Assembly: GCA_965112735.1 (NCBI GenBank)
Contig: OZ218950.1
Span: 6,386,001 to 6,450,000 of the forward strand
Origin: Phaeosaccion multiseriatum
Lineage: Eukaryota; Protista; Ochrophyta, other classes
Reading direction: 5' to 3'
Length of the DNA: 64,000 bases
Shown here: positions 7,428 through 38,097 of the stretch, one piece after another
Layout of the letters: every line of letters begins with the position of its first letter
Numbering within the stretch: position 1 is the first letter of the stretch
The notes under the pieces: generated by a model
Seen by the model: the letters and a program-made list of their open reading frames with translations, nothing else
The model's database searches: none
What the model was told of the DNA's origin: nothing
Position numbers and translations under genes: made by a program

Positions 7428-9275
7428 ATGAGGGGGAGGACGGGCGATGCTACGCCTGGGGCAGGGACAGCGGCTCTAAGGACTGTGGCCAGCCTCATCT
7501 CTGACAAAGCTCTGTGGGGTGTGTGCAAGAAGGTCGATGAGGTCACTGCCCGCACTCTGAGGATCAACGCCGAAATGCCCCAGCGTGTCCAGCAGCGCAT
7601 GCTGAGTCTGCTGAAGCGGCAGCAGGAAGAGGAGGGGAGAAGCGCTGCTTTGGCTTGGCCCACCGCGACTATGCTTACTGCCTCTGCTGCTGCAGCTGCT
7701 GGCTGTGAGGAATGTCCTGCAGTGGGAGCGCGAAGATCGGGGAGGATTCGGGCGAGGCAGGAAGCGCAGCAGCAGCAGAAGCGGCGTGGGAAGAGGCAGC
7801 GCAATGAGGCTGGACCTCCTGATGAGGGGGGCTTGTTTCGCGTGGTGTCTGTGGAGCTCGGTCGTAAGGCCAAGACCTACCAAGATTCGAAGGACGACGC
7901 CAAAATATCTGCTGATGAGGCTCTCGTAACGAAGGTATTGGCGCTGCTGCCAGCATCGGTCAAGCTTGTGCGCTTCTCTGGGGAGTTCAATCAGGCCAAC
8001 GTATGTCTTCCTGGCACAGTTATGGAAGTGGAGCTCGGGTGGCAATTCAACAAACACATCAATCTCCCTGCCTTTCTGAAGAAGATCAAGTTTGAAAAGG
8101 ACTCGAAGTTCAATCAGCAGTTGGTCCTTCCTTTTGGTGTGGAGGAGGTGCAGATGGGGAGTGACTTCAACCTCCCTCTGGACCTGCCTGCCTCGCTGAA
8201 GAAGATCAAATTTCATGAGGACTCGGAGTTCAATCGGCAGTTGGTCCTTCCTTGTCGTGTGCAGGAGGTGGAGATTGGGGATGACTTTAACCTCCCTCTT
8301 GAGCTGCCTGCCTCTGTGAAGAAGATCAGATTTGGCTATCACTTCAATCAGCAGTTGGTCCTTCCTTGTGGTGTGGAGGAGGTGCAGATGGGGCGTGACT
8401 TCAACCTCCCTGTGGAGCTGCCTGCCTCTCTGAAGAAGATCAAGTTTCATCCGGACTCGGATTTCAATCAGCAGTTGTTCCTTCCTTGTCGTGTGGAGGA
8501 GGTGGTCATGGGGCTTGACTTTAACCTCCCTCTGGAGCTGCCTACCTCTCTGAAGAGGATCAGATTTAGCTTTCACTTTAATCAGCACGTGGTCCTTCCT
8601 TGTGGTGTGGAGGAGGTGGTGATGGGGCGTGACTTTAACCTCCCTCTGGAGCTGCCTACCTCTCTGAAGAAGGTCAGATTTGTTGCGTACTCCAAGTTCA
8701 ATGAGCAGTTGGCCCTTCCTTGCGGTGTGGAGGAGGTGCAGATGGGGGGTGACTTTAACCTCCCTCTGGAGCTGCCTACCTCTCTGAAGAAGATTAAGTT
8801 TCATCAGTACTCCAAGTTCAGTCAGCAGCTGGTCCTTCCTCCTGGTGTGGAGGAGGTGCAGATGGGGGATGACTTTAACCTCCCTCTGGAGCTGCCTGCC
8901 TCTCTGAAGAAGGTCAGATTTGGCTGGAAGTTCAATCAGCACGTGGTCCTTCCTTGTGGTGTGGAGGAGATGCAGATGGGGCGTGACTTTAATGTCCCTC
9001 TGGACCTGCCTGCTTCGCTAAAGAAAATCGAGTTTGATTATTCCTCCAGCTTCGATCAGCAGTTGGTCCTTCCTTGTGGTGTGGAGGAGGTGCGGATGGG
9101 GCCTGTCTTTAATCGCCCTCTGGAGCTGCCTGCTTCTCTGCGGACTCTGATACTGGGACCGCGTTACACCTGCCCTTTGGAGAGCCTGCCTGCTGGCCTT
9201 AGGACGCTTTGGGTTGGGATGGACGTCCCGCTGCCTGCAGATCTACCCGAGGGGCTAAAGGTGATTCACTTATAA
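7428..9275 (+). CDS. FNIP-repeat (LRR-like) protein 1, 615 aa, intronless, 9 double repeats
   Basis: Alternating FNQQLVLPCGVEEVQMGxx / FNLPLELPASLKKIKFx(3,5) units; C-cap YTCPLESLPAGLR. Confidence 0.92.
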   Translation: MRGRTGDATPGAGTAALRTVASLISDKALWGVCKKVDEVTARTLRINAEMPQRVQQRMLSLLKRQQEEEGRSAALAWPTATMLTASAAAAAGCEECPAVGARRSGRIRARQEAQQQQKRRGKRQRNEAGPPDEGGLFRVVSVELGRKAKTYQDSKDDAKISADEALVTKVLALLPASVKLVRFSGEFNQANVCLPGTVMEVELGWQFNKHINLPAFLKKIKFEKDSKFNQQLVLPFGVEEVQMGSDFNLPLDLPASLKKIKFHEDSEFNRQLVLPCRVQEVEIGDDFNLPLELPASVKKIRFGYHFNQQLVLPCGVEEVQMGRDFNLPVELPASLKKIKFHPDSDFNQQLFLPCRVEEVVMGLDFNLPLELPTSLKRIRFSFHFNQHVVLPCGVEEVVMGRDFNLPLELPTSLKKVRFVAYSKFNEQLALPCGVEEVQMGGDFNLPLELPTSLKKIKFHQYSKFSQQLVLPPGVEEVQMGDDFNLPLELPASLKKVRFGWKFNQHVVLPCGVEEMQMGRDFNVPLDLPASLKKIEFDYSSSFDQQLVLPCGVEEVRMGPVFNRPLELPASLRTLILGPRYTCPLESLPAGLRTLWVGMDVPLPADLPEGLKVIHL

Positions 9276-10347
9276 GGGATGACGTGACTTGACAGAATCG
9301 GAGGGGCACTCGAGGCCGAGAAAGAACGTTCAAGAGCGAGGCTGGGCAGGATGTGCATTCACATGAGAGCAGCAGCAGCAGCAGCAGCAGCTGCCGCCGC
9401 AGGGAGGAAGGAGCTGCCTCTTGAGAGTGAAGCGCCAAGGTGGATCAGGGTCAGGGCCAGAGGGTCAAGGGATGTTAGCACGGCTGAGTGTGAGGTTGGC
9501 CTCCATTGTCTTTTCGAATCGAGCGTGACTTCATGAGTGGGTGTGTCCATCCTCTGCTGGCAGATGGTGTCTAGGAATGCAGGCAAGGTGGTCATGGGCA
9601 ACAGCGGCAGCAGCAAGAGCAAGAAGAGCAAGAGTAAGAGCAACAACGAGGGAGGCGACGGGAGGTGAAGCAGACAAGGGACTATAGATCCAAGCAGGAG
9701 GAGCAGCAGAAGCAGCAACAGCAGCAGAGCAAGAGGGTGAGGGGAAGCAGCGGCACGGCGTGGGTGAAGGGCAGAGGGGCAGAGTGGCTGCAAGGGCAAG
9801 AGGAGGCAAGGGGGGGCGATGCGGGTGAGAGACAGGAGCTCAAGCAAGAGGAGGAGGAGCAGCGGGAGTGAGAGGGGTGGGAGGAGGAGTAGCGGAGGAT
9901 CAAGGGCAGCAGCAAAGCAGGAGGGGTGTTTGTCCTCCACGATGTCAAGGCGGGGGCAAGCGCGGCATCCTTCGTCAGACCCCCGGGGGAGCAAGGGCGT
10001 TCGAAAGAGCCCCCCACTTGCAAGCCCTCGGCGGTGTGGGAGGAGGCAGCGGCGGTGCCAGCAGACGGAGGAGGACGACCACGAACGACGAGAGCAGGAG
10101 AGGTGCATGGTGGGTCGAGGGCAGAGCTTCGACCCCCTTCAGCGGAGGGGATCTGAGCGGCAGGAGAAGAAAGCCCAGCGCCAGCAGCACCGGCGACCCT
10201 CCCGACGCGCAGCCCCAGCCTCATCTTCAGCGGCGGCACTGCTTGGGTCAAGGGCAGGAGTCGCGGCCTCGATGCCCGATACCCGAGACTCCACCCTCCC
10301 GCTCCTCCTCCCTGTCCCGCTACGGTGCGTCTGCAGGGGCTTGGGAC

Positions 10348-11229
10348 ATGCCCCCCGGGGGAGAGGGAGCATCTCCTCTGCCTGGTCCGGATGGAGACAA
10401 AGGTGAGCGATCATTTCATGCGGACATCGAGTCAACCCCCCCCCCCCCCTTCTCCTTGCGCTGTATGGGAAGGGGATGTGTGTTGCTCTCTCACTTGTCT
10501 CGAACTGACTTGCAGGCACGCACTCTCTGACCCCTCCTCTTTGTTCTGTCGCTCTCTCTCTCTGTCGCCCTCTTCATCTCTTTCGTGTGCCTCTCGTTCT
10601 CCAACCCTCTGTTGCATTGCTCGAAATCTGCTTTTCTCCCCCTCCCCTGTCGCCCTCTCCTTCTCTCCCTCTCTCCTTCTCACTCGCGGTATCTCTCTCA
10701 CACATAATTGTCCCTGTCTTTGCCTCCCTCTCTTTCCCTCCCTCCCTCCCTCCCTCTTCTCTGCTGCTGCATCGCTCCATTTGTGATCTCTACTCACAGC
10801 TCGGGCCTACATGTCTCTGAACGACCTCTCTTCCGCCAGCGCTCACCTCGCCAGGGCACTAGAGGTGGACCCTCACTGTCCAGGAGGTGCGTTGGTGGGG
10901 AGGGAGGATGGCAGTGGATAGGGGGGGGGGGGGAGGACGAAGTGGGCAAGCAGAGGAAGGACCATTCGCATTCACTCACAGCCTTAATTGCGTTTGTTGA
11001 TCTGTTGTGTCACCCCTTTCGCCCCTCCCCTCCCCTCCCTCCAGCCTACGTGGACCTTGGTCAGTTGTGCACGCAGGAGGGCAAGGTGGAGGAGGCGCTT
11101 TGTCTGTACGAGAAGGGCGTGCTCCACTCGCGCTACTTGCACGAGCTGCACGATGCCATGACGTGTCTGCTTGTGGCCAAGGAGCACCTCGCTGCCAAGG
11201 AGGAGCTGGGGATGGGGGACGAGGAGTGA
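10348..11229 (+). CDS. Tom70-like C-terminal TPR module, copy 1 (exons ..10402, 10800-10886, 11045-11229); partial or chimeric gene
   Basis: Phase-compatible GT-AG joins give ARAYMSLNDLSSASAHLARALEVDPHCPGAYVDLGQLCTQEGKVEEALCLYEKGVLHSRYLHELHDAMTCLLVAKEHL, resembling the last TPRs of Tom70. Start uncertain. Confidence 0.55.
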
Positions 11230-11682
11230 AGCAGGAGGGGAGGGGAGGGGAGGAGAGGGGAGGGGGGGAGAGAGGGCGGAGGGGAGAGGAGTAGCGTAGA
11301 GTAAGGTCTGGTGTACTCTTGGCAGCAGGACTGAGAGGAGCGTCCAGGAGGGCGTGTCAGTCGCAGGGGGCAGAGAAGCTCAGCAACAGCGGAGCCGTGC
11401 AAGTACTCAGAGTAGGGAGAGGCAGAGGCAGCAATTACCCTATCAATGAATCAAAGGCCCTCTTCAGCCCCGAATCCGCTTAGCTTCCATCCATCTGTGA
11501 CTGGATTGGCTGGATTCTACCCGAGGACCTTGCCCACAGCTTGGCAGACGGAGCAGCAGCCAGCAGGGCAAGAGAGAAGAGGAAGTAGTAGCAGTGGTGG
11601 CAGAGGACGGAGAAGGGCGGTCCCAAGGAGGGCCCCAGGACAGAAAGAAGAGATTCGCCGGGGGAAGGTCGAGGGGGGAGAA

Positions 11683-13167
11683 ATGAGGGGGGAGAGGGGC
11701 GATGCTACGCCTGGGGCAGGGACAGCGGCTCTGAGGACTGTGGCCAGCCTCATCTCCGACAAAGCTCTGTGGGGGGTGTGCAAGGAGGTCGATGAGGTCA
11801 CCACCCGCACTCTGAGGATCAACGCCGAAATGCCCGAGCGTGTCCAGCAGCGCATGCTGAGTCTGCTGAAGCGGCAGCAGCAAGAGGAGGGGAGAAGCGC
11901 TGCTTTGGCTTCGTCTTCCGCGACTATGCGTACTGCCTCTGCTGCTCCATCTACTGGCTGTGAGGAAAGACGTACTGCGGAGGGAGCGCGAAGATCGGGG
12001 AGGATTCGGGCGAGGCAGGAAGCGCAGCAGCAGCAGGAGCGACGTGGGAAGAGGCAGCGCAATGAGGCTGGATGTCCTGGTGAGGGGGGATTTTTTCGCG
12101 TGGTGTCTGTGGAGCTCGGCCTCAGCACGTACCTACATTCTGAGTACGATGCCAAGGTTTGTGCTGATGAGGCTCTCGTAGGGAAGGCACTCGCGCTGCT
12201 GCCAGCATCGGTCAGGCTTGTGCGCTTCTCTGAGTACTTCAATCAGGCCGACGTATGTCTTCCTGGCACAGTTGTGGAAGTGGAGCTTGGCCGGAAATTC
12301 AACAAACACATCGATCTCCCTGCCTCTCTGAAGAAGATCAAGTTTGAAATGGACTCGGATTTCAATCAGCAGTTGGTCCTTCCTTGTGGTGTGGAGGAGG
12401 TGCAGATGGGGTATGCCTTTAACCTCCCCCTGGAGCTGCCTGCCTCGCTGAAGAACATCAAATTCGGCTATCTCTTCAATCAGCACGTGGTCCTTCCTTG
12501 TGGTGTGGAGGAGGTGGAGATGGGGTATTACTTCAACCTCCCTCTGGATCTGCCTGCCTCCCTGAAGAAGATCAAGTTTTATAGGTACTCTTCCTTCAAT
12601 CAGCAGTTGGTCCTTCCTTGTGGTGTAGAAGAGGTGGAGATGGGGCGTGACTTTAACCGCCCTCTGGACTTGCCTGCCTCTCTGAAGAAGATCAAATTTG
12701 CCTATCGCTTCAATCAGCACGTGGTCCTTCCTTGTGGTGTGGAGGAGGTGCAGATGGGGCGTGACTTTAACCTCCCTCTGGAGCTGCCTGCCTCTCTGAA
12801 GAAGATCAAATTTTATGAGGGATCGGAGTTCAATCAACAGTTAGTCCTTCCTTGTGGTGTGGAGGAGGTGGAGATGGGGTATCACTTTAACCTCCCTCTG
12901 GAGCTGCCTGCCTCTCTGAAGAAGATCAGACTTGGTTATCACTTCAATCAGCAGATGGCTCTTCCTTGTGGTGTGGAGGAGGTGCAGATGGGGTATGACT
13001 TTAACCTCCCTCTGGAGCTGCCTGCTTCTCTGCGGACTCTGAAACTGGGATGGAATTACACCTGCCCTTTGGAGAGCCTGCCTGCTGGACTGAGGAAGCT
13101 TTGGGTTAGGGCCAACTGCCTGCTGCCTGCAGATCAACCCGAGGGGCTAAAGGTGTTTCGCTATTAA
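11683..13167 (+). CDS. FNIP-repeat protein 2, 494 aa from the conserved ATG (an in-frame upstream ATG at 11446 gives 573 aa), 6 double repeats
   Basis: Same architecture as FNIP1; the ATG at 11683 is the one conserved in all paralogues. Confidence 0.92.
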   Translation: MRGERGDATPGAGTAALRTVASLISDKALWGVCKEVDEVTTRTLRINAEMPERVQQRMLSLLKRQQQEEGRSAALASSSATMRTASAAPSTGCEERRTAEGARRSGRIRARQEAQQQQERRGKRQRNEAGCPGEGGFFRVVSVELGLSTYLHSEYDAKVCADEALVGKALALLPASVRLVRFSEYFNQADVCLPGTVVEVELGRKFNKHIDLPASLKKIKFEMDSDFNQQLVLPCGVEEVQMGYAFNLPLELPASLKNIKFGYLFNQHVVLPCGVEEVEMGYYFNLPLDLPASLKKIKFYRYSSFNQQLVLPCGVEEVEMGRDFNRPLDLPASLKKIKFAYRFNQHVVLPCGVEEVQMGRDFNLPLELPASLKKIKFYEGSEFNQQLVLPCGVEEVEMGYHFNLPLELPASLKKIRLGYHFNQQMALPCGVEEVQMGYDFNLPLELPASLRTLKLGWNYTCPLESLPAGLRKLWVRANCLLPADQPEGLKVFRY

Positions 13168-14246
13168 GGGGTGACGAGCCTCAAGTGAATTGGAGGGGCA
13201 CTCGAGGCCGAGAATGAAGGGTCAGGGGAGAGACTGGGCAGGAGAGAAGTCGACGCTGTATGGAGGTGTATTCACAGAAGAGCAGCGGCAGGGAGGAAGG
13301 AGCTGTACCGTAACAGTGAGGCGCCAAGGTGGGTCAGGATCAGGGTCAGAGGGTCAGGGGGTCAGCCATGGCATGGTTGAGAGTTAGGGCCGCCCTCAAT
13401 CTCTCTCGACCTTGGTCAGACCCCCCGGGGAGGTAGGGAGAGAGAAAGAGGGCCCCCTACTTGCAACCCCTCGGCGGTGTCGGAGGGGGCAGCGGCGATG
13501 GCCGCAGAGGGAGGAGGAGGAGGAGGAGGAGGAGGAGGAGGAGGAGGAGGAGGAGGAGGAGGAGGAGGAGGGGCAGGGGAGGAGCATGATGAATGGACGG
13601 CAGCTTCGACCCCCTTCAACGGAGGGGCTCTCAGCAGCAGCAAAAGGAAGCCCAGCACCAGCAGCACCGGCGACCCTCCCGACGCGCAGCCCCAGCCTCA
13701 TGTTCAGCGGCGGCACTGCTTGGGCCAAGGGCGGGATTCGTGGTCTATGTGCCCGATCCCTGATAGTCCACCCTCCCGCTCCTCCTCCCTGTCCCGCTAC
13801 GGGGCGTCTGCAGGGGCTGGTACACGCCCCCCGGGGGAGAGGGAGCCTCGTGTCTGCCTGGTCCGGATGGAGACAAAGGTGAGCGATCATTTCATGCGGA
13901 CATCGAGTCAACCCTCCTCCCATTCTCCTTGCGCTGTATGGGAAGGGGATGTGTGTTGCTCTCTCGCTTCTCTCGAACTGACTTGCCGCCACGTACTCTC
14001 TGACCCCTCCTCTTTGATCTGGCTCTCTCTCTCTGCTCTCTCCATCTCTTTTACCGTCTCTCTGTGTGCCTCTCTTTCTCCAACCCTCTGTTGCATTGCT
14101 CGAAATCTGCCTTTCTCCCCCTCCTCTGTTGCCCTCTCCTTCTCACTCGCGGTATCTCTCTCTCACACATAATTGTCTCTCTCTTTCCCTCCTTCTCTCT
14201 CTCTTTTCTGCTGCTGCATCGCTCCATCTCTGATCTCTACTCACAG

Positions 14247-14861
14247 CTCGGGCCTACATGTCTCTGAACGACCTCTCCTCCGCCAGCGCTCACCTCGCCA
14301 GGGCACTAGAAGTGGATCCTCACTGTCCAGGAGGTGCGTTGGTGGGGAGGGAGGATGGCAGTAGATGGGGGGGGGGGGGGGGGGGGGGACTATGTGGGGT
14401 TGCAGGGAAGACAAGCAGAGGAAGGGAAGTGCCTTCGTGGGGTGTCAAGCGGGCAGGAGGTGGAGGCGGGGGCGGCGGCGGCGGCGGCGGCGGCGGAGGA
14501 GGAGGAGAAGGAGGCGGTGGGTTGTCAAGGATGAAGAGCAGAGGAAGGACCACTCACAGCCTCACCCACTTCAGGCTCCTCTCCTGTTCCTAATTGCACG
14601 GTCGTCCGTCTGTTGTGCGCCCCCTTCGCCCCTCCCTCCCTACGTCCTTCGCTCCCCTCCCCTCCCCTCCCTCCAGCCTATATGGACCTTGGTCAGTTGC
14701 GCATGCAGGAGGGCAAGGTGGAGGAGGCGCTTTGTCTGTACGAGAAGGGCGTGCTCCACTGGCGCTACTTGCACGAGCTGCACGATGCCATGACGTGTCT
14801 GCTTGTGGCCAAGGAGCACCTCTCTGCCAAGGAGGAGCTGGGGATGGGGGACGAGGAGTGA
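14247..14861 (+). CDS. Tom70-like TPR module, copy 2 (exons 14247-14333, 14677-14861; upstream exon frameshifted)
   Basis: Same two exons, open; the upstream exon ending 13878 is out of phase relative to the other copies. Confidence 0.45.
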
Positions 14862-15115
14862 AGCAGGAGGGGAGGGGAGAGGAGTAGCGTAGAGTAAGGT
14901 CTGGTGTACTCTTGGCAGCAGGACTGAGAGGAGCGTCAAGGTGGGGAGCGCCGCAGGGAAGCTCAGCAACAGCGGAGACGTGCAAGTACTCAGAGTAGGG
15001 AGAGGCAGAGGCAGCAATTACCCTATCAATGAATCAAAGGCCCTCTTCAGCCGCGCTCTACCCGTACCCGCTTAGCTTCCATCCATCTGTGACTGGATTG
15101 GCTGGATTCTACCCG

Positions 15116-15373
15116 TCGGCTCCAGGCGACAGAAGCCGTAGCCCCCTCCAGGCTTCGGGCTTCTGGCCGCAGGCCAGCGCAGGCTTCTGGCCGCAGGCCA
15201 GTGGTCAGGCTTCAGGCTTCTCAGGCTGGGAGAAAAATGGGGGACTTGGCAGGCTTCTCGCTACTTTCTGCAGGCTTCTGGCCGCAGGCCAGCCGCAGGC
15301 TTCTTATTTTCGGCCGCAGGCCGCCGCAGGCTTCTGCTTTATCGGGGGCCCGAGAAACCTCGCCTGGAGCCGA
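15116..15373. mobile_element. 258-bp MITE, 14-bp TIR TCGGCTCCAGGCGA, 6-bp TSD TACCCG
   Basis: Perfect TIRs with TACCCG on both sides. The empty site GGATTCTACCCGAGGACC is present upstream of FNIP1, 2 and 4. Internal CAGGCTTC repeats. Confidence 0.92.
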
Positions 15374-15394
15374 TACCCGAGGACCTTGCCCACA

Positions 15395-15945
15395 TCCGAC
15401 CAAGAATATGGGGACGGCCACAAATCACTTATGATTGATGTCACGCTCACAGATGCCACCAACATCACCAATCGGGCCAAGGCATCGAAGGAGGCACTCG
15501 CGGCAGCCAAGAAGGCTGAAGCAACCAAGCGGACGAGATATGGGGTGCCACAGGTAGGCATGGAAGGCCAGCGTGGGGATATCCACTATGACCCCACGAG
15601 GTACCACCTCGTCCCTTTCGCAATGGAACAGCAAGGCGCATTTGGTCCTTCTGCTCAGTCGTTTATGAAAACCCTTGCCACCCCACATGGCTGGGGGGCA
15701 CGAACATCTGGACATGAGGGCTTATGCGAGAGCTGTTTGCGTCATTCGGCGGCGATTAGCCGTAGCGCTCCAGCGGGCCCGACACGAACGATCGGTTCGA
15801 CACAGGATCCTGGCTGGTATCAACTTTGTTCCAATGGGGAGAACTGATGAGTCAGAGGGACACGACCTCGAGGGCTAAGTTCCCCCGGGGCGGTGAGACA
15901 TTACTTTTAGACAACCATAGATGGCACTTAAGGGTGTAATATATT
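15395..15945 (+). mobile_element. 5'-truncated non-LTR retrotransposon (CRE-like), restriction-like endonuclease C-terminus plus 3' UTR, frameshifted
   Basis: LMIDVT..AAKKAEATKRTRY..LVPFAMEQQGAFGPSAQSFMKTLA, then after a frameshift RRLAVALQR; ends in an AT-rich tail; absent from the homologous site of FNIP1, 2 and 4. Confidence 0.8.
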
Positions 15946-16107
15946 ACAGCCTTTTTTTGGCAGACGGAGCAGCTAGTAGGGCAGCGAGAGACGCAAGAGG
16001 GAAGAGGAAGTAGTAGCAGTGGTGGCAGAGGACGGAGCAGGGCGGTCCCAAGGAGGGCCCCAGGACAGAAAGAAGAGATTCGCCGGGGGAAGGTCGAGGG
16101 GGGAGAA

Positions 16108-17628
16108 ATGAGGGGGGAGACGGGCGATGCTACGCCTGGGGCAGGGACAGCGGCTCTGAGGACTGTGGCCAGCCTCATCTCCGACAAAGCTCTGTGGGGG
16201 GTGTGCAAGGAGGTCGATGAGGTCACCACCCGCACTCTGAGGATCAACGCCGAAATGCCCGAGCGTGTCCAGCAGCGCATGCTGAGTCTGCTGAAGCGGC
16301 AGCAGCAAGAGGAGGGGAGAAGCGCTGCTTTGGCTTCGTCTTCCGCGACTATGCGTACTGCCTCTGCTGCTCCATCTACTGGCTGTGAGGAAAGACGTAC
16401 TGCGGAGGGAGCGCGAAGATCGGGGAGGATTCGGGCGAGGCAGGAAGCGCAGCAGCAGCAGGAGCGACGTGGGAAGAGGCAGCGCAATGAGGCTGGACCT
16501 CCTGGTGAGGGGGGCTTCTTTCGCGTGGTGTCTGTGGAGCTCGGTCTCAAGACCTACCGAGATGATGACGAGGAGCTCGGCCTCGGGACGTACCAAGATG
16601 ACGACGCCAAAGTATCTGCTGATGGGGCTCTCGTAGGGAAGGTACTCGCGCTGCTGCCAGCATCGGTCAGGCTTGTGCGCTTCTCTGAGTCTTTCAATCA
16701 GGCCGACGTATGTCTTCCTGGCACAGTTGTGGAAGTGGAATTCGGGCGGCACTTTAACAAACACGTCGATCTCCCCGCCTCTCTGAAGAAGATCAAGTTT
16801 GTGGAGTCCTCGGAGTTCAATCAGCAGTTGGTCCTTCCTTGCGGTGTGGAGGAGGTGCAGATGGGGTGTGACTTTAACCTGCCTCTGGAACTGCCTGCCT
16901 CTCTGAAGAAGATCACATTCGGTTGGAGCTACAACCAGCACGTGGTCCTTCCTTGTGGGGTGGAGGAGGTGGAGATGGGGTTTGACTTTAACCACCCTCT
17001 GGACCTGCCTGCTTCTCTGAAGAAGATCAGATTTGCCTATCTCTTCAATCAGCACGTGGTCCTTCCTTTTGGTGTGGAGGAGATGGAGATGGGGTATCGC
17101 TTTAACCTCCCTCTGGATCTGCCTACCTCTCTGAAGAAGATCACATTCGGTTGGAGCTACAACCAGCACGTGGTCCTTCCTTGTGGGGTGGAGGAGGTGG
17201 AGATGGGGTTTGACTTTAACCTCCCCCTTGAGCTGCCTGCCTCGCTGAAGAAGATCAGATTTGGCTATGACTTCAATCAGCACGTGGTCCTTCCTTGTGG
17301 TGTGGAGGAGATGGAGATGGGGTATCGCTTTAACCTCCCTCTGGAACTGCCTACCTCTCTGAAGAAGATCAGATTTGATGAGGAATCTCGCTTCAATCAG
17401 CACGTGGTCCTTCCTTGTGGTGTGGAGGAGGTGGAGATGGGGGATGCCTTTAACCTCCCTCTGGAGCTGCCTGCTTCTCTGCGGACTCTGAAACTGGGAC
17501 GGTATTACACCTGCCCTATGGAGAGCCTGCCTGCCGGACTGAGGAAGCTTTGGGCTCGGACCAACTACCCGCTGCCTGCGGATCTACCCGAGGGGCTGGA
17601 GGTGTTTCGCTTGGAAGGGATGGCGTGA
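16108..17628 (+). CDS. FNIP-repeat protein 3, 506 aa, 6 double repeats
   Basis: Same architecture as FNIP1. Confidence 0.92.
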   Translation: MRGETGDATPGAGTAALRTVASLISDKALWGVCKEVDEVTTRTLRINAEMPERVQQRMLSLLKRQQQEEGRSAALASSSATMRTASAAPSTGCEERRTAEGARRSGRIRARQEAQQQQERRGKRQRNEAGPPGEGGFFRVVSVELGLKTYRDDDEELGLGTYQDDDAKVSADGALVGKVLALLPASVRLVRFSESFNQADVCLPGTVVEVEFGRHFNKHVDLPASLKKIKFVESSEFNQQLVLPCGVEEVQMGCDFNLPLELPASLKKITFGWSYNQHVVLPCGVEEVEMGFDFNHPLDLPASLKKIRFAYLFNQHVVLPFGVEEMEMGYRFNLPLDLPTSLKKITFGWSYNQHVVLPCGVEEVEMGFDFNLPLELPASLKKIRFGYDFNQHVVLPCGVEEMEMGYRFNLPLELPTSLKKIRFDEESRFNQHVVLPCGVEEVEMGDAFNLPLELPASLRTLKLGRYYTCPMESLPAGLRKLWARTNYPLPADLPEGLEVFRLEGMA

Positions 17629-18206: not shown

Positions 18207-18238
<32 letters not shown>

Positions 18239-23989: not shown

Positions 23990-24119
23990 GGTCCAGCTAT
24001 CGTCCAAAGAGAGGGCGCCGACCTTTTTGGCCCCTATGACTCTCAATTTTTTATTATCGTACCGACTCTACAAGTCGATGTATTACTATTAGAGAGCGCT
24101 GTCTGGCCCAAGGGCAGAG

Positions 24120-29469: not shown

Positions 29470-30590
29470 ATGGGGAGGAGGAGGGGAAGGAGAGAACCAA
29501 TGTGGGTGGAGGGCAGAGCGACCATCCCCTTCAGCGGAGGGGATCTCAGCAGAAGTAGAATGAAGCCCAGCGCCAGCAGCACCGGCGACCCTCCCGACGC
29601 GCAGCCCCAGCCTCATGTTCAGCGGCGGCACTGCTTGGGCCAAGGGCAAGAGTCGCGACCTCGATGCCCGATCCCCGAGACTCCCCCCTCCCGCCCCTCC
29701 TCCCTGTCCCGCTACGGTGCGTCTGCAGCGGCTTGGTACGTGCCCCCCGGGGGAGAGGGAGCATCTCCTCTGCCTGGTCCGGATGGAGACAAAGGTGAGC
29801 GATCATTTCATGCGGACATTGAGTCAACCCTCCTCCCATTCTCCTTGCGCTGTATGGGAAGGGGATGTGTGTTGCTCTCTCACTTCTCTCGAACTGACTT
29901 GCCGCCACGTACTCTCTGACCCCTCCTCTTTGTTCTGTCGCTCTCCTCTCGCTCCCTCTCTCTGCTCTCTCTCCATCTCTTTTCCCCTCTCTCTGTGTGC
30001 CTCTCTTTCTCCAACCCTCTGTTGCATTGCTCGAAATCTGCCTTTCTCCCCCTCCCCTGTCGCCCTCTCCTTCTCTCCCTCTCTCCTTCTCACTCGTCTC
30101 CCTTCCTCCCTCTTCTCTGCTGCTGCATCGCTTCATGTCTGATCTCTACTCACAGCTCGGGCCTACATGTCTCTGAACGACCTCTCTTCCGCCAGCGCTC
30201 ACCTCGCCAGGGCACTAGAGGTGGATCCTCACCGTCCAGGAGGTGCGTTGGTGGGGAGGGAGGATGGCAGTGGATGGGGGGGGGGGGGGAGGACGAAGTG
30301 GGCAAGCGGAGGAAGGACCATTCACATTCACTCACAGCCTTAATTGCGTTTGTTGGTCTTTTGTGTGACCCCTTTCGCCCCTCCCCTCCCCTCCCCTCCC
30401 TCCAGCCTGCATGGACCTTGGTCAGTTGCGCATGCAGGAGGGCAAGGTGGAGGAGGCGCTTTGTCTGTACGAGAAGGGCGTGCTCCACTCGCGCTACTTG
30501 CACGAGCTGCACGATGCCATGACGTGTCTGCTTGTGGCCAAGGAGCACCTCGCTGCCAAGGAGGAGCTGGGGATAGGGGACGAGGAGTGA
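29470..30590 (+). CDS. Tom70-like TPR module, copy 3 (exons 29470-29794, 30156-30242, 30406-30590)
   Basis: Three exons in phase from ATG 29470; the first exon is low-complexity and non-TPR. Confidence 0.5.
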
Positions 30591-31042
30591 AGCAGGGGGG
30601 GAGGGGAGGGGAGAGGGCGGAGGGGAAAGGAGTAGCGCAGAGTAAGGTCTGGTGTACTCTTGGCAGCAGGACTGAGAGGAGCGTCCAGGAGGGGAGCGGC
30701 GCGTCAGTCGCAGGGGGCAGGGAAGCTCAGCAACAGCGGAGCCGTGCAAGTACTCAGAGTAGGGAGAGGCAGAGGCAGCAATTACCCTATCAATGAATCA
30801 AAGGCCCTCTTCAGCCCCCGAATCCGCTTGGCTTCCATCCATCTGTGACTGGATTGGCTGGATTCTACCCGAGGACCTTGCCCGCAGCTTGGCAGACGGA
30901 GCAGCAGCCAGTAGGGCAGCGAGAGACGCAAGAGAGAAGAGGAAGTAGTAGCAGTGGTGGCAGAGGACGGAGCAGGGCGGTCCCAAGGAGGGCCCCAGGA
31001 CAGAAAGAAGAGATTCGCCGGGGGAAGGTCGAGGGGGGAGAA

Positions 31043-33223
31043 ATGAGGGGGGAGAGGGGCGATGCTACGCCTGGGGCAGGGACAGCGGCTCTGAGGACTG
31101 TGGCCAGCCTCATCTCCGACAAAGCTCTGTGGGGGGTGTGCAAGGAGGTCGATGAGGTCACCACCCGCACTCTGAGGATCAACGCCGAAATGCCCGAGCG
31201 TGTCCAGCAGCGCATGCTGAGTCTGCTGAAGCGGCAGCAGCAAGAGGAGGGGAGAAGCGCTGCTTTGGCTTCGTCTTCCGCGACTATGCGTACTGCCTCT
31301 GCTGCTCCATCTACTGGCTGTGAGGAAAGATGTCCTGCGGAGGGAGCGCGAAGATCGGGGAGGATTCGGGCGAGGCAGGAAGCGCAGCAGCAGCAGGAGC
31401 GACGTGGAAAGAGGCAGCGCGACGAGGCTGGACCTCCTGGTGAGGGGGGCTTCTTTCGCGTGGTGTCTGTGGAGCTTGGCCTCAGCACGTACCTACATTC
31501 TGAGTACGATGCCAAGGTTTGTGCTGATGAGGCTCTCGTAGGGAAGGCACTCGCGCTGCTGCCACCATCGGTCAGGCTTGTGCGCTTCTCTGAGTATTTC
31601 AATCAGGCCGACGTATGTCTTCCTGGCACAGTTGTGGAAGTGGAATTCGGGTGGCACTTTAACAAACACATCGATCTCCCTGCCTCTCTGAAGAAGATCA
31701 AGTTTAAATGGTACTCGGAGTTCAATCAGCAGTTGGTCCTTCCTTGTGGTGTGGAGGAGGTGCAGATGGGGCGTCACTTTAACCTCCCTCTGGACCTGCC
31801 TGCCTCTCTGAAGAGGATCAAATTTCATGAGGAATCGGAGTTCAATCAGCAGTTGGTCCTTCCTTGTGGTGTGGAGGAGGTGGAGATGGGGCGTGACTTT
31901 AACGTCCCTCTGGAGCTGCCTGCCTCTCTGAAGAAGATCAAGTTTAGTTGGAAATTCAATCAGCAGGTGGTCCTTCCTTGTGGTGTGGAGGAGATGGAGA
32001 TGGGGCATGACTTTAACCTCCCTCTGGAGCTGCCTGCCTCGCTGAAGAAGATCAAATTCGGCTATCACTTCAATCAGCACGTGCTCCTTCCTTGTGGTGT
32101 GGAGGAGGTGGAGATGGGGTATGACTTTAACCTCCCTCTGGAGCTGCCTGCCTCTCTGAAGAAGATCAAGTTTGTAGGGCGCTCTTACTTCAATCAGCAG
32201 TTGGTCCTTCCTTGTGGTGTGGAGGAGGTGGAGATGGGGAGTGACTTTAACGTCCCTCTGGAGCTGCCGGCCTCTCTGAAGAAGATCAAGTTCTGCGGAG
32301 GATTTAATCAGCACGTGGTCCTTCCTTGTGGTGTGGAGGAGGTGGAGATGGGGCATGCCTTTAACCTCCCTCTGGAGCTGCCTGCCTCTCTGAAGAAGAT
32401 CAAATTCGGCTTTCACTTCAATCAGCATGTGGTCCTTCCTTGTGGTGTGGAGGAGGTGCAGATGGGGTTTGACTTTAACCTCCCTCTGGAGCTGCCTGCC
32501 TCTCTGAAGAACATCAAGTTCGGCGATCACTTCAATCAGCAGTTGGTCCTTCCTTGCGGTGTGGAGGAGGTGCAGATGGGGAATGCCTTTAACCTCCCTC
32601 TGGACCTGCCTGCCTCTCTGAAGAAGATCAAATTTTATGAGGGATCGGATTTCAATCAACAGTTAGTCCTTCCTTGTGGTGTGGAGGAGGTGGAGATGGG
32701 GGGTGACTTTAACCTGCCTCTGGAGCTGCCTGCCTCTCTGAAGAGGATCAAATTCGGCTATCGCTTCAATCTGCACGTGGTCCTTCCTTGTGGTGTGGAG
32801 GAGGTAGAGATGGGGCTTGACTTTAACCTCCCTCTGGAGCTGCCTGCCTCGTTGAAGAAGATCAGCTTTGGTAGCAAGTTCAATCAGCAGTTGGTCCTTC
32901 CTTGTGGTGTGGAGGAGGTGGAGATGGGGTATCACTTTAACCTCCCTCTGGAGCTGCCTGCCTCTCTGAAGAAGATCAAGTTTTATGAGTACTCGGATTT
33001 CAACCAGCAGCTGGTCCTTCCTTGTGGTGTGGAAGAGGTGGAGATGGGGTTTTACTTTAATCACCCTCTTGAGCTGCCTGCTTCTCTGCGGACTCTGAAA
33101 CTGGGACGGAAATACACCTGCCCTTTGGAGAGCCTGCCTGCCGGACTGAGGAAGCTTTGGGCTGGGACCAACTACCCGCTGCCTGCAGATCTACCCGAGG
33201 GGCTGGAGGTGTTTCGCTGGTAA
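31043..33223 (+). CDS. FNIP-repeat protein 4, 726 aa, 12 double repeats
   Basis: Same architecture; conserved ATG at 31043. Confidence 0.92.
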   Translation: MRGERGDATPGAGTAALRTVASLISDKALWGVCKEVDEVTTRTLRINAEMPERVQQRMLSLLKRQQQEEGRSAALASSSATMRTASAAPSTGCEERCPAEGARRSGRIRARQEAQQQQERRGKRQRDEAGPPGEGGFFRVVSVELGLSTYLHSEYDAKVCADEALVGKALALLPPSVRLVRFSEYFNQADVCLPGTVVEVEFGWHFNKHIDLPASLKKIKFKWYSEFNQQLVLPCGVEEVQMGRHFNLPLDLPASLKRIKFHEESEFNQQLVLPCGVEEVEMGRDFNVPLELPASLKKIKFSWKFNQQVVLPCGVEEMEMGHDFNLPLELPASLKKIKFGYHFNQHVLLPCGVEEVEMGYDFNLPLELPASLKKIKFVGRSYFNQQLVLPCGVEEVEMGSDFNVPLELPASLKKIKFCGGFNQHVVLPCGVEEVEMGHAFNLPLELPASLKKIKFGFHFNQHVVLPCGVEEVQMGFDFNLPLELPASLKNIKFGDHFNQQLVLPCGVEEVQMGNAFNLPLDLPASLKKIKFYEGSDFNQQLVLPCGVEEVEMGGDFNLPLELPASLKRIKFGYRFNLHVVLPCGVEEVEMGLDFNLPLELPASLKKISFGSKFNQQLVLPCGVEEVEMGYHFNLPLELPASLKKIKFYEYSDFNQQLVLPCGVEEVEMGFYFNHPLELPASLRTLKLGRKYTCPLESLPAGLRKLWAGTNYPLPADLPEGLEVFRW

Positions 33224-33600
33224 GGGATGACGTGCCTCAACTGAGTTGGAGGGGCCCTCGATGCCGAGTGTGAAGGGTCAGGGGAGAGAAGAAGACACTG
33301 CGTGGATTTGCATTCACAGCACAGCAGCAGCAGGGAGGAAGGAGCTGTACCGTAACAGGAAAGCACCAAGGTGGGTCAGGATCAGGGCCAGAGGATCAGG
33401 GGGTCATGGCATGGTTGAGAGTTAGGGCCGCCTTCATTCTCTCTCGACCTTGGTCAGACCCCCCGGGGAGGTAGGGAGAGAGAAAGAGCGCCCTCTACTT
33501 GCAACCCCTCGGCGGTGTCGGAGGGGGCAGCGGCGATGGCCGCAGAGGGAGGAGCCGGAGGAGGAGGAGGAGGAGGAGGGGCAGGGGAGGAGCATGATGA

Positions 33601-34882
33601 ATGGACGGCAGAGCTCCGACCCCCTTCAACGGAGGGGCTCTCAGCAGCAGCAAAAGGAACCCCAGCGCCAGCAGCACCGGCGACCCTCCCGACGCACAGC
33701 CCCAGCCTCATGTTCAGCGGCGGCACTGCTTGGGCCAAGGGCAGGACTCGCGGCCTCGATGCCCGATCCCCGAGACTCCACCCTCCCGCTCCTCCTCCCT
33801 GTCCCGCTACGGTGCGTCTGCAGGGGCTTGGTACGCGCCCCCCGGGGGAGAGGGAGCATCTCCTCTGCCTGGTCCGGATGGAGACAAAGGTGAGCGATCA
33901 TTTCATTCGGAAATCGCGTCACCCCCCCCCCCCCCCTCTCCTTGCGCTGTATGGGAAGGGGATCTGTGTTGCTCTCTCACTTCTCTCGAACTGACCTGCA
34001 GGCACGTACTCTCTGACCCCTCCTCTTTGTTCTGTCGCTCTCTCTCTATCGCCCTCTTCATCTCTTTCGTGTGCCTCTCGTTCTCCAACCCTCTGTTGCA
34101 TTGCTCGGAACCTGCCTTTCCCCCCCTCCCCTGTCGCCCTCTCCTTCTCTCCCTCTCTCCTTCTCACTCCCCCTCTTTCCCTCCCTCTCTCTCTCCCTCC
34201 CTCCCTCCCTCTCTCTCTTCTGCTGCTGCATCGCTCCATGTCTGCTATCTACTCACAGCTCGGGCCTACATGTCTCTGAACGACCTCTCTTCCGCCAGCG
34301 CTCACCTCGCCAGGGCACTAGAGGTGGATCCTCACTGTCCAGGAGGTGCGTTGGTGGGGAGAGAGGATGGCAGTGGATGGGGGGGGGCGGGGGGGGGTAG
34401 GACTAGGTGGGGTTGCAGGGAAGACAAGCAGAGGAAGGGAAGTGCCTTCGTGGGGTGTCAAGCGGGCAGGAGGTGGAGGCGGGGGCGGCGGCGGCGGCGG
34501 CGGAGGAGGAGGAGGAGGAGGAGGAGGAGAAAGAGGTGATGGGTTGTCAAGGATGAAGAGCAGAGGAAGGACCACTCACAGCCTCACCCACTTCAGGCTC
34601 CTCTCCTGTTCCTAATTGCACGTTCGTCCGTCTGTTGTGCGCCCCCTTCGCCCCTCCCTCCCTACGTCCTTCGCTCCCCTCCCCCCCCTCCCTCCAGCCT
34701 ATATGGACCTTGGTCAGTTGCGCATGCAGGAGGGCAAGGTGGAGGAGGCGCTTTGTCTGTACGAGAAGGGCGTGCTCCACTCGCGCTACTTGCACAAGCT
34801 GCACGATGCCATGACGTGTCTGCTTGTGGCCAAGGAGCACCTCGCTGCCAAGGAGGAGCTGGGGATGGGGGACGAGGAGTGA
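33601..34882 (+). CDS. Tom70-like TPR module, copy 4 (exons 33601-33889, 34259-34345, 34698-34882)
   Basis: Three exons in phase from ATG 33601. Confidence 0.5.
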
Positions 34883-35155
34883 AGCAGGAGGGGAGGGGAG
34901 GAGAGAGGGCGGAGGGGAAAGGAGTAGCGTAGAGTAAGGTCTGGTGTACTCTTGGCAGCAGGACTGAGAGGAGCGTCAAGGTGGGGAGCGCCGCAGGGAA
35001 GCTCAGCAACAGCGGAGACGTGCAAGTACTCATAGTAGGGAGAGGCAGAGGCAGCAATTACCCTATCAATGAATCAAAGGCCCTCTTCAGCCGCGCTCTA
35101 CCCGTACCCGCTTAGCTTCCATCCATCTGTGACTGGATTGGCTGGATTCTACCCG

Positions 35156-35413
35156 TCGGCTCCAGGCGACAGAAGCCGTAGCCCCCTCCAGGCTTCGGGC
35201 TTCTGGCCGCAGGCCAGCGCAGGCTTCTGGCCGCAGGCCAGTGGTCAGGCTTCAGGCTTCTCAGGCTGGGAGAAAAATGGGGGACTTGGCAGGCTTCTCG
35301 CTACTTTCTGCAGGCTTCTGGCCGCAGGCCAGCCGCAGGCTTCTTATTTTCGGCCGCAGGCCGCCGCAGGCTTCTGCTTTATCGGGGGCCCGAGAAACCT
35401 CGCCTGGAGCCGA
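35156..35413. mobile_element. 258-bp MITE, second copy (TIR TCGGCTCCAGGCGA, TSD TACCCG)
   Basis: Appears identical to 15116-15373, at the same site. Confidence 0.92.
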
Positions 35414-35431
35414 TACCCGAGGACCTTGCCC

Positions 35432-35988
35432 ACATCCGACCACGAATATGGGGAGGGCCACAAATCACTTATGACTGATGTCACGCTCACAGATGCCACC
35501 AACATCACCAATCGGGCCAAGGCATCGAAGGAGGCACTCGCGGCAGCCAAGAAGGCTGAAGCAACCAAGCGGACCAGGTATGGGGTGCCACAGGTAGGCA
35601 TGGAAGGCCAGCGTGGGGATATCCACTATGACCCCACGAGGTACCACCTCGTCCCTTTCGCAATGGAACAGCAAGGCGCATTTGGTCCTTCTGCTCAGAC
35701 GTTTATGAAAACACTTGCCACCCCACATGGCTGGGGGGCACGAACATCTGGACATGAGGGCTTATGCGAGAGCTGTTTGCGTCATTCGGCGGCGATTAGC
35801 CGTAGCGCTCCAGCGGGCCCGACACGAACGATCGGTTCGACACAGGATCCTGGCTGGTATCAACTTTGTTCCAATGGGGAGAACTGATGAGTCAGAGGGA
35901 CACGACCTCGAGGGCTAAGTTCCCCGGGGCGGTGAGACATTACTTTTAGACAACCATAGATGGCACTTAAGGGTGTAATATATATCAT
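35432..35988 (+). mobile_element. 5'-truncated CRE-like LINE, second copy, flanked by ACCTTGCCC direct repeats
   Basis: Same RLE peptide and frameshift; ACCTTGCCC at 35423-35431 and 35989-35997 (TSD-like). Confidence 0.82.
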
Positions 35989-36156
35989 ACCTTGCCCGCC
36001 GCTTGGCAGACGGAGCAGCAGCCAGCAGGGCAGCGAGAGATCCAAGAGAGAAGAGGAAGTAGTAGCAGTGGTGGCAGAGGACGGAGCAGGGCGGTCCCAA
36101 GGAGGGCCCCAGGACAGAAAGAAGAGATTCGCCGGGGGAAGGTCGAGGGGGGAGAA

Positions 36157-38097
36157 ATGAGGGCGGAGACAGGCGATGCTACGCCTGGGGCAGGGACAGC
36201 GGCTCTGAGGACTGTGGCCAGCCTCATCTCCGACAAAGCTCTGTGGGGGGTGTGCAAGGAGGTCGATGAGGTCACCACCCGCACTCTGAGGATCAACGCC
36301 GAAATGCCCGAGCGTGTCCAGCAGCGCATGCTGAGTCTGCTGAAGCGGCAGCAGCAAGAGGAGGGGAGAAGCGCTGCTTTGGCTTCGTCTTCCGCGACTA
36401 TGCGTACTGCCTCTGCTGCTCCATCTACTGGCTGTGAGGAAAGATGTCCTGCGGAGGGAGCGCGAAGATCGGGGAGGATTCGGGCGAGGCAGGAAGCGCA
36501 GCAGCAGCAGGAGCGACGTGGAAAGAGGCAGCGCGACGAGGCTGGACCTCCTGGTGAGGGGGGCTTCTTTCGCGTGGTGTCTGTGGAGCTTGGCCTCAGC
36601 ACGTACCTACATTCTGAGTACGATGCCAAGGTTTGTGCTGATGAGGCTCTCGTAGGGAAGGCACTCGCGCTGCTGCCAGCATCGGTCAGGCTTGTGCGCT
36701 TCTCTGAGTCTTTCAATCAGGCCGACGTATGTCTTCCTGGCACAGTTGTGGAAGTGGAATTCGGGTGGCACTTTAACAAACACATCGATCTCCCTGCCTC
36801 TCTGACGAAGATCAAGTTTTGTCCGCTCTCGGATTTCAATCAGCAGTTGGTCCTTCCTTGTGGTGTGGAGGAGGTGCAGATGGGGCGTCACTTTAACCTC
36901 CCTCTGGACCTGCCTGCCTCTCTGAAGAGGATCAAATTTCATGAGCGATCTCACTTCAATCAGCAGTTGGTCCTTCCTTGTGGTGTGGAGGAGGTGGAGA
37001 TGGGGTATGACTTTAACCTCCCCCTGGAGCTACCTGCCTCTGTGAAGAAGATCAAATTCGGCTATCACTTCAATCAGCACGTGGTCCTTCCTTGTGGTGT
37101 GGAGGAGGTGCAGATGGGGGGTGACTTTAACCTCCCTCTGGACCTGCCTGCCTCTCTGAAGAGGATCAAATTTCATGAGCGATCTCACTTCAATCAGCAG
37201 TTGGTCCTTCCTTGTGGTGTGGAGGAGGTGGAGATGGGGTGTGCCTTTAACCTCCCCCTGGAGCTACCTGCCTCTGTGAAGAAGATCAAATTCGGCTATC
37301 ACTTCAATCAGCACGTGGTCCTTCCTTGTGGTGTAGAGGAGGTGGAGATGGGGTGTGCCTTTAACCTCCCCCTGGAGCTACCTGCCTCTGTGAAGAAGAT
37401 CAAATTCGCCTATCGCTTCAATCAGCACGTGGTCCTTCCTTGTGGTGTGGAGGAGGTGGAGATGGGGTGTGACTTTAACCTCCCTGTGGAGCTGCCTGCC
37501 TCGCTGAAGAAGGTCAGCTTTGGCTGGAAGTTTAATCAGCACGTGGTCCTTCCTTGTGGTGTGGAGGAGGTGCAGATGGGGGGTGACTTTAACCTGCCTC
37601 TGGAGCTACCTGCCTCTGTGAAGAAGATCAAATTCGCCTATCGCTTCAATCAGCACGTGGTCCTTCCTTGTGGTGTGGAGGAGGTGGATATGGAGGGTGA
37701 CTTTAACCTCCCTGTGGAGCTGCCTGCCTCCCTGAAGAAGGTCAGCTTTGGCTGGAAGTTCAATCAGCACGTGGTCCTTCCTTGTGGTGTGGAGGAGGTG
37801 GAGATGGGGGATGACTTGAACCTCCCTCTGGAGCTGCCTGCCTCTCTGAAGAAGATCATATTTGGCTATGACTTCAATCAGCAGTTGGTCCTTCCTTGTG
37901 GTGTGGAGGAGGTGGAGATGGGGAGTAACTTTTTTCACCCTCTTGAGCTGCCTGCTTCTCTGCGGACTCTGAAACTGGGATGGAATTACACCTGCCCTTT
38001 GGAGAGCCTGCCTGCTGGACTGAGGAAGCTTTGGGCTAGGATCGACTACCCGCTGCCCGCGGATCTACCCGAGGGGCTGAAGGTGTTTCGCTTGTAA
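36157..38097 (+). CDS. FNIP-repeat protein 5, 646 aa, 10 double repeats
   Basis: Same architecture; conserved ATG at 36157. Confidence 0.92.
   Translation: MRAETGDATPGAGTAALRTVASLISDKALWGVCKEVDEVTTRTLRINAEMPERVQQRMLSLLKRQQQEEGRSAALASSSATMRTASAAPSTGCEERCPAEGARRSGRIRARQEAQQQQERRGKRQRDEAGPPGEGGFFRVVSVELGLSTYLHSEYDAKVCADEALVGKALALLPASVRLVRFSESFNQADVCLPGTVVEVEFGWHFNKHIDLPASLTKIKFCPLSDFNQQLVLPCGVEEVQMGRHFNLPLDLPASLKRIKFHERSHFNQQLVLPCGVEEVEMGYDFNLPLELPASVKKIKFGYHFNQHVVLPCGVEEVQMGGDFNLPLDLPASLKRIKFHERSHFNQQLVLPCGVEEVEMGCAFNLPLELPASVKKIKFGYHFNQHVVLPCGVEEVEMGCAFNLPLELPASVKKIKFAYRFNQHVVLPCGVEEVEMGCDFNLPVELPASLKKVSFGWKFNQHVVLPCGVEEVQMGGDFNLPLELPASVKKIKFAYRFNQHVVLPCGVEEVDMEGDFNLPVELPASLKKVSFGWKFNQHVVLPCGVEEVEMGDDLNLPLELPASLKKIIFGYDFNQQLVLPCGVEEVEMGSNFFHPLELPASLRTLKLGWNYTCPLESLPAGLRKLWARIDYPLPADLPEGLKVFRL

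Follow-up and report, generated by a model that had tools for sequence, protein, structure and literature searches.

A cluster of five genes encoding FNIP-repeat proteins was found in the genome of the ochrophyte alga Phaeosaccion multiseriatum. The window analyzed is 64,000 nucleotides long (GenBank assembly GCA_965112735.1, contig OZ218950.1, forward-strand positions 6,386,001–6,450,000), has ~58% G+C, and is numbered here from its first base. The genes, termed g1 to g5, probably form a cluster of soluble intracellular FNIP solenoids that arose by tandem and segmental duplication and whose variable segments, two in each repeat unit, were diversified in the germline under diversifying selection. 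The variable-site pattern itself is already known for the FNIP/FGxxFN class.

All five genes are intact plus-strand open reading frames (ORFs), uninterrupted from the start to the C-terminal cap (C-cap), with shared MRGE or MRAE starts at 7428, 11683, 16108, 31043, and 36157. Each encodes an N-terminal region of ~200 aa that begins at this methionine, an array of near-identical double repeat units, and a C-cap. Gene g1 (7428–9275, 615 aa) has its N-terminal region at 7428–8006, nine double units at 8007–9068, and its C-cap at 9069–9272; it matches the Pfam family FNIP (PF05725) with an E-value of 4.5e-57. Gene g2 (11683–13167) encodes 495 aa from its MRGE start, within a mechanical ORF that opens at 11446, and has six double units at 12259–12960 and a C-cap at 12961–13164 (FNIP E-value 1.7e-47). 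Gene g3 (16108–17628, 506 aa) has six double units at 16714–17409 and a C-cap at 17410–17625 (7.5e-44), and a 10-residue insertion in its N-terminal region is specific to it. The longest, g4 (31043–33223), encodes 726 aa counted from its MRGE methionine, the ORF itself opening at 30845; it has 12 double units at 31619–33016 and a C-cap at 33017–33220 (7.6e-84). Gene g5 (36157–38097) lies in an ORF that opens at 35992 and encodes 646 aa counted from MRAE; it has 10 double units at 36733–37890 and a C-cap at 37891–38094 (4e-68).

An earlier reading of the window, made without database searches (hereafter the sequence-only reading), had described five intronless FNIP/leucine-rich repeat (LRR) genes, each with a conserved N-terminal region, an N-cap, 9/6/6/12/10 double repeats, and a C-cap. 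The five plus-strand ORFs were recovered at the same coordinates, parsing into units of 38 or 40 aa matched the cap and repeat structure exactly, and the first ~76 residues of the N-terminal region are almost invariant among the paralogues. Intronless here refers to an ORF that runs without a break as far as the C-cap; the gene models are predicted. Within the 64-kb window, no FNIP fragment occurs outside g1–g5.

The layout points to segmental duplication. Self-BLAST aligned a plus-strand block at 10712–17628 (spacer, g2, spacer, g3) with a second at 30063–38097 (spacer, g4, spacer, g5) at ~92% identity. The two blocks are paralogous, and the cluster arose by segmental duplication. Between the duplicated blocks, the p-distance is 0.067 in the non-coding 3′ flank and 0.027 in the 5′ flank. 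Gene g1 is the most divergent paralogue, with a synonymous divergence (dS) of 0.08–0.14 in the N-terminal region against the other four.

Units were parsed by regular expression. Their consensus is LPCGVEEVxMGxxFNLPLELPASLKKIKFxxx(Sx)FNQ[QH][LV]V, 38 or 40 aa long, and resolves into two short LRRs: an A repeat of 19 aa (LPCGVEEVxMGxxFNLPLE) and, in alternation with it, a B repeat of 19 or 21 aa (LPASLKKIKFxxx[Sx]FNQxxV). The FN motif is nearly universal among the 38 internal units, with F in 37/38 and N in 38/38 A repeats, and F and N each in 36/38 B repeats. The motif starts with M-G in A repeats and with F followed by G or another residue in B repeats. Pfam FNIP matches all five proteins over 4–13 stretches per protein, far above the family cut-off of 21 bits. 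With phmmer, g3 matches the solved protein Crov588 (6nyr) of Cafeteria roenbergensis virus at an E-value of 1.2e-66 and Crov539 at 7.5e-17.

Predicted structures agree with an LRR-like fold, as the sequence-only reading had proposed. In an AlphaFold2 model of g3, the repeat domain reaches a predicted local distance difference test score (pLDDT) >90 and shows one short strand every 19–21 residues. A model of g4, covering residues encoded from 31529, has a pLDDT of 86.7, a predicted template modeling score (pTM) of 0.72, and 29 strands, again spaced 19–21 residues apart. Foldseek placed solved FNIP members at ranks 1–3. Crov588 ranked first for g3 (E-value 1.8e-17, query TM-score 0.50–0.55), and the closed-circle Crov588 ranked first for g4 (E-value 7.5e-28, query TM-score 0.75 over 631 columns). 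Other comparable TM-scores for g4 came from the ring-shaped ectodomains of Toll-like receptors TLR7/8/9 (query TM-score 0.5–0.6). From these models and matches to Crov588, the short paralogues are predicted to be arcs and the 12-unit g4 a near-closed ring like Crov588. Searches for a signal peptide or membrane helix found no segment hydrophobic enough in the five proteins (maximum Kyte-Doolittle value 1.49, no N-terminal hydrophobic segment). The proteins are therefore predicted to be soluble and intracellular, in line with the sequence-only reading. In the C-caps (e.g., 17410–17625), the last three repeats leave the FNIP type (LPASLRTLKLG..YTCP.ESLPAGLRKLW......LPADLPEGL), and the g3 C-cap shows weak similarity to LRRs found in bacterial E3-ligase effectors of the IpaH/SspH type (E-value 5e-5 to 2e-3).

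Variation within units is concentrated at a few positions. Across the 38 internal units, column entropy reaches 2.4–3.1 bits at unit columns 12, 30, 31, 32, and 34; column 13 has 1.5 bits. Scaffold columns are mostly at 0–0.8 bits, with five at 0.83–1.7. D, Y, G, H, R, E, and W are abundant at the variable positions; Y, W, F, and H together make up 31%, D and E 26%, and I, L, V, and M 4%. These positions fall into segment 1, the xx of MGxxFN in the A repeat, and segment 2, which precedes FN in the B repeat. In the g3 model, strands at E249–Q251 and K268–T270 are followed by variable residues 254–255 and 272–274, two to five residues past the strands. Aligned to the repeat LxxLxFGxxFN, segment 1 occupies positions 8–9 and segment 2 positions 7–9. 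The two segments are thus one structural site seen in two repeat subtypes that alternate: the xx of FGxxFN. Since the repeats stack in register, segments of the A and B repeats alternate along one continuous stripe. The xx of FGxxFN was already published as the most variable position of the class, at the margin of the concave face, and the FNIP repertoire has been compared with the jawless-fish variable lymphocyte receptors (VLRs) (PMC9525666).

Most of what the sequence-only reading said of these residues was recovered. The di-, tri-, and penta-residues that it listed are all present, and the enrichment in Y, W, F, H, R, and D that it noted is seen in the aromatic- and charge-rich composition. 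Its two hypervariable segments stand as a few fast-changing positions on a fixed scaffold, but not as two distinct sites. The single continuous surface that it proposed to check by structure prediction is consistent with the strand register of the AlphaFold2 model and the published crystal structure.

Selection on the variable codons was assessed from proportions of non-synonymous (pN) and synonymous (pS) differences by Nei-Gojobori counting. Pooled over all units, pN is 0.50 and pS 0.34 at variable codons, whereas scaffold pS is 0.16 and scaffold pN 0.073. Among unit pairs with <3% scaffold nucleotide divergence, variable pN is 0.325 against a scaffold pS of 0.027. Positional homologues between paralogues, N-cap units included, give a variable pN of 0.456 against a scaffold pS of 0.14 (Fisher p 5e-9, pairs non-independent). 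Variable pN is also far above the 3′ non-coding flank divergence of 0.067. The outcome of the test proposed in the sequence-only reading, a ratio of non-synonymous to synonymous change (dN/dS) at these sites, is non-synonymous change above both synonymous and flanking change.

In segment 1, codon positions 1 and 2 have nucleotide diversities of 0.52 and 0.47, and position 3 has 0.00; the codons are always NNT, then GAC, GCC, CAC, CGC, or TAC. The 17 internal segment-1 alleles require at least 16 steps, all non-synonymous (neutral p ~0.046). A mutation hot spot, whether like a diversity-generating retroelement or of another kind, is unlikely to be the sole cause of segment-1 diversity, as third codon positions never vary. 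Variable pN above scaffold pS, invariant segment-1 third positions, and mosaic units (below) support diversifying selection on the segments, combined with exchange between units on a homogenized scaffold. No paper quantifying positive selection on FNIP repeats was found in the literature.

Exchange between units is extensive. In the unit alignment, all four gametes occur at ~40% of the informative site pairs, however far apart the sites lie, and the Hudson-Kaplan minimum number of recombination events (Rm) is 19 within 114 nt. None of 15 unit pairs with identical segment-2 codons shares segment 1, and none of 40 pairs with identical segment-1 codons shares segment 2. The two segments assort independently, and the units are mosaics. 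Units 1 (RH/HERSH) and 3 (GD/HERSH) of g5 have identical scaffolds and different segments. The same holds for g5 units 2 (YD/GYH), 4 (CA/GYH), and 5 (CA/AYR). Recent internal unit duplications are evident in g5 (units 1 and 3; 2, 4, 5, and 7; 6 and 8), and whole-unit duplications are seen in both g5 and g3. Units 0 of g4 and g5 differ by 8 nt within one 15-nt stretch. As these differences are clustered and the surroundings nearly identical, they probably reflect exchange of a patch rather than independent point changes. The arrays of g4 and g5 differ although their N-terminal dS is 0.007. This mosaicism is attributed to germline evolution. As each of the five genes is complete in the germline, there is no sign of VLR-like assembly.

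The N-terminal region stands apart from the repeats. Neither a word-based search nor exhaustive phmmer found a homologue of the ~200 aa (0 hits among 1.84 billion representatives), and no Pfam family, F-box included, matches them at E-values up to 10. A language-model (Atlas) feature search of this part gave scores ≤0.81, a chance level that shuffled proteins also reach. In the g3 AlphaFold2 model, the first ~170 residues mostly have a pLDDT <50, with long helices at 29–78 and 100–128. N-terminal dN/dS is 0.3–1.1 overall. One basic stretch (RRSGRIRAR…RRGKRQR) is a putative nuclear localization signal. Across the five proteins Pfam gives FNIP as the only family; NB-ARC, TIR, kinase, ROC-COR, NACHT, death fold, and F-box are not detected. 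Genes g1–g5 form a new, lineage-specific FNIP subfamily with strictly alternating 19/21-aa repeats and an N-terminal region lacking a detectable homologue.

We propose that each repeat would contribute one short beta-strand and that the residues just after it, positions 7/8–9, would line one edge of the concave face. Diversity probably comes from duplication and deletion of whole units, from recombination or gene conversion between near-identical scaffolds that yields mosaic units with reassorted segments, and from point substitutions at positions 1 and 2 of the variable codons. Diversifying selection would retain this diversity while the scaffold and the 5′ half of the genes are kept uniform. 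The stripe may be a ligand-binding surface, most likely for proteins, with each paralogue having its own specificity. Several points weigh against this proposal. Concerted evolution lowers scaffold pS and so inflates the ratio of variable pN to scaffold pS. Clustered segment differences probably reflect imported patches, so that the apparent rate is not simply a substitution rate, and the event-based test on segment 1 alone is only marginal. The surface stripe is modeled from the strand register and a published crystal structure, ligand binding is proposed by analogy with the protein class, and the gene models and transcription of g1–g5 are predicted from DNA sequence.

Much of the same evidence bears on readings that assume other causes or assign a function. 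The segments might be unconstrained loops, with purifying selection and gene conversion maintaining a uniform scaffold and the genes being dispensable or virus-derived passengers. Concerted evolution is evident and lowers scaffold pS, N-terminal dN/dS is 0.3–1.1, and, of the nearest database relatives (28–35% identity), the two looked up lie on metagenomic contigs that are gene-dense and virus-like. Neutral loops, however, would be expected to diverge no more than neutral sequence, and segment pN is 0.33–0.46 against 0.067 in the flanking spacer and 0.03–0.14 at scaffold synonymous sites. Segment-1 third positions are invariant while positions 1 and 2 vary, and gene conversion alone would homogenize the segments too. 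With five ORFs intact, caps included, and intron-containing host genes as neighbors, we consider the absence of selection for diversity very unlikely. Highly improbable, too, is a ubiquitin-ligase substrate adaptor in which a degenerate F-box-like N-terminal module is joined to an FNIP array that selects proteins for degradation, as proposed for the F-box-FNIP proteins of Megavirus and Dictyostelium. That architecture is documented (PMC9525666), and residues 17–40 (LRTVASLISDKALWGVCKEVDEV) are loosely F-box-like by eye. The feature search did list Nucleocytoviricota F-box/FNIP clusters, but at 0.79–0.81, the level of shuffled proteins. Neither Pfam, at E-values up to 10, nor phmmer detects an F-box family here, and AlphaFold2 predicts one long 50-residue helix rather than a three-helix F-box, at a pLDDT below 50–70.

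An antiviral or antiparasite role, suggested in the sequence-only reading, found no support: Pfam gives no signaling domain, the N-terminal region has no homologue, and the gene context does not point to such a role. As an immune receptor repertoire, the paralogues would recognize pathogen molecules through the stripe and the N-terminal region would trigger defense. Diversifying selection on a binding-type surface, tandem clustering, dynamic copy and repeat numbers, and a paratope-like composition rich in Y, W, H, R, and D would fit, and the pattern is typical of the LRRs of plant NLR proteins. A comparable proposal was made for brown-alga LRR-ROCO genes (PMC3341825), and FNIP genes are the fastest-varying genes between near-identical virophages of a giant-virus system (PMC10945749). 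This function is unlikely. No NB-ARC, TIR, ROC-COR, kinase, or death fold is detected, and the region that would trigger defense has no homologue among the 1.84 billion representatives and a low-confidence model. The FNIP class is abundant in giant viruses, where it would serve the attacker rather than the host, and mating, self-recognition, and ubiquitin-adaptor systems likewise contain binding families that evolve fast. A bolder extension, which we regard as distinctly unlikely, holds that several hundred near-identical FNIP scaffolds genome-wide are a substrate for germline or somatic recombination that reassorts segment cassettes into a combinatorial intracellular repertoire against viruses and parasites, the N-terminal region being a new signaling or effector module. 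If true, a VLR-like logic would have been reached independently in a stramenopile alga.

Comparison with known systems places the proposed germline-diversified FNIP cluster nearest to Crov588 (6nyr) and Crov539 (7zal) of Cafeteria roenbergensis virus. The likeness extends to sequence, fold, FN motif, LP start, and near-identical repeats, and the longest paralogue resembles the closed ring. FNIP repeats are described as 22 aa long, or 21 in Megavirus baoshan (PMC9525666), and those of g1–g5 are shorter, at 19 and 19/21 aa. This is a length variant and no argument against FNIP homology. In further contrast to the viral proteins, two repeat subtypes alternate strictly in g1–g5, A repeats carry Met for the Phe of FG (MGxxFN), and in B repeats the Gly is variable and a two-residue Sx insertion is optional. 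The IpaH/SspH-like C-cap, the algal host, and the N-terminal region also set g1–g5 apart. F-box-FNIP proteins of Megavirus baoshan and Dictyostelium likewise join an N-terminal non-repeat module to a C-terminal FNIP array, but no F-box is detectable in g1–g5. Best database relatives are FNIP proteins at 28–35% identity, with dictyostelid proteins among the matches, and the contigs of two relatives, the ones looked up, are metagenomic and dense in genes. IMG/VR and JGI metagenomes gave no relative with full-length or repeat alignments, a weak blank as two short peptide patterns were used.

Large lineage-specific FNIP families are also known from brown seaweeds, relatives of this alga, with 104 FNIP sequences in Ectocarpus (PMC9525666) and 121 FNIP proteins in Saccharina japonica (PMC4421812). 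Database searches with g1–g5 gave no close sequence relative, the best being 31–35% identical. An FNIP pseudogene has been reported in a viral fragment of Ectocarpus (PMC2373305). Brown-alga LRR-ROCO and NB-ARC-TPR genes (PMC3341825, PMC11378527) resemble g1–g5 in broad lineage, shuffled repeat modules, and fast-evolving repeat residues. In those genes each exon carries a single repeat, and a ROC-COR or NB-ARC domain is present, whereas g1–g5 are single-ORF arrays in which no such domain is detected. The closest algal precedent in concept is exon shuffling in the LRR-ROCO candidate receptors, for which an immune role was proposed (PMC3341825). VLRs share an LRR scaffold, variable residues on or near the concave face, and mosaic LRR cassettes with short shared homology. 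They are completed somatically from an incomplete germline gene by cytidine-deaminase-dependent copy-choice and are secreted or membrane-anchored. In contrast, g1–g5 are complete from start to C-cap in the germline, lack a signal peptide, and have no orphan cassettes in the window.

How protists and algae recognize viruses and parasites is largely unknown, and large, fast-evolving binding families are obvious candidates. The cluster is a clean, quantified example of selection and inter-unit exchange focused on one stripe of a very regular LRR scaffold. Because the paralogues differ almost only in the stripe, g1–g5 are convenient for binding and knock-out tests. As the pattern was already described for FNIP/FGxxFN proteins, their value lies in offering a well-characterized test case and a scaffold variant with short repeats (19 aa), not in any new principle.

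Copy number was gauged by word depth, summed in one sequencing run (X1); the figures are rough. Depth is ~100–300 in unique spacer, ~1,000 in the N-terminal region, and 7,800–32,000 in the repeat arrays. These values suggest about five copies of the N-terminal region, which would confine it to the g1–g5 cluster, whereas the array depth implies many more occurrences of scaffold words in the rest of the genome. Contig sets from sequencing runs that match the locus cover spacers as well as genes and are thus DNA-like. Two independent DNA samples contain paralogue-specific sequence without mismatch (e.g., 16529–16655, which holds the g3-specific insertion, and 13076–13232). The sequence-only reading had raised the possibility of assembly artifacts; these paralogue-specific contigs back the copies and argue against simple artifacts, although they are too short to span the arrays. 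Positions 12880 and 13117 differ in the second DNA sample and were not used for a strain comparison, as multi-copy words make assignment unsafe. At four spacer positions (13277, 13966, 14311, and 14130), every contig of most or all DNA runs, the independent sample included, disagrees with the window base. These bases may be assembly errors or fixed sample differences.

Spacers of 2.3–2.9 kb separate the FNIP genes and are repeated (families D12–D19) and non-coding. A 312-aa spacer ORF was considered as a partner gene and rejected: its frame shifts between copies, which indicates that the spacers are not coding, it is of low complexity, and it has only sub-threshold TPR matches. A high-copy dispersed repeat of ~834 bp lies at 15116–15949, ~160 nt upstream of the g3 start codon, and a second copy occupies the same insertion site upstream of g5 (35156–35989). 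Alignment of empty and filled sites shows that this upstream site lacks the insertion in g2 and g4. Divergence is 0.8% between the two copies but 3–10% between their flanks, and word depth is 7,000–40,000 against ~100–300 in unique spacer, or 35–200 times higher. The repeat has internal 23–41-nt subrepeats; no Pfam match was found, and neither terminal inverted repeats nor a target-site duplication was clearly visible.

Host-type genes lie between g3 and g4 and downstream of the cluster. They encode Afi1/DENN-like, LRR, biotin/lipoate ligase, TPR, WRKY19-type zinc-finger, and peroxidase proteins, and the neighbors of the cluster are ordinary intron-containing genes. A viral-insert or mobile-element context was rejected: given these surroundings the cluster is not in an obvious viral insert, and neither a reverse transcriptase nor a transposase turned up in a non-exhaustive scan of ORFs. 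The window contains no tRNA and no Rfam family. Between 18600 and 29100, microsatellites of the CACTCA type, which read as (THSL)n, are abundant on both strands, as are low-complexity ORFs rich in proline and serine; both lie in host-gene introns and spacers. An uninterrupted plus-strand ORF of 759 aa at 40643–42922 has WRKY19-type zinc-finger repeats (PF24906, E-value 4e-38, five stretches, CxxxGCxxxxxxGGxCxxHG) followed by a long low-complexity tail, and is probably a transcription-factor-like host gene. A second plus-strand ORF of 756 aa (52589–54859) matches no Pfam family and has long poly-Q, poly-G, and poly-H tracts; a poly-Phe run of >40 residues lies near its mechanical start, and its 5′ part is probably non-coding. 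At the window start, an exon of the animal-heme-peroxidase type (PF03098, E-value 6e-8) lies on the minus strand at 1702–2631.

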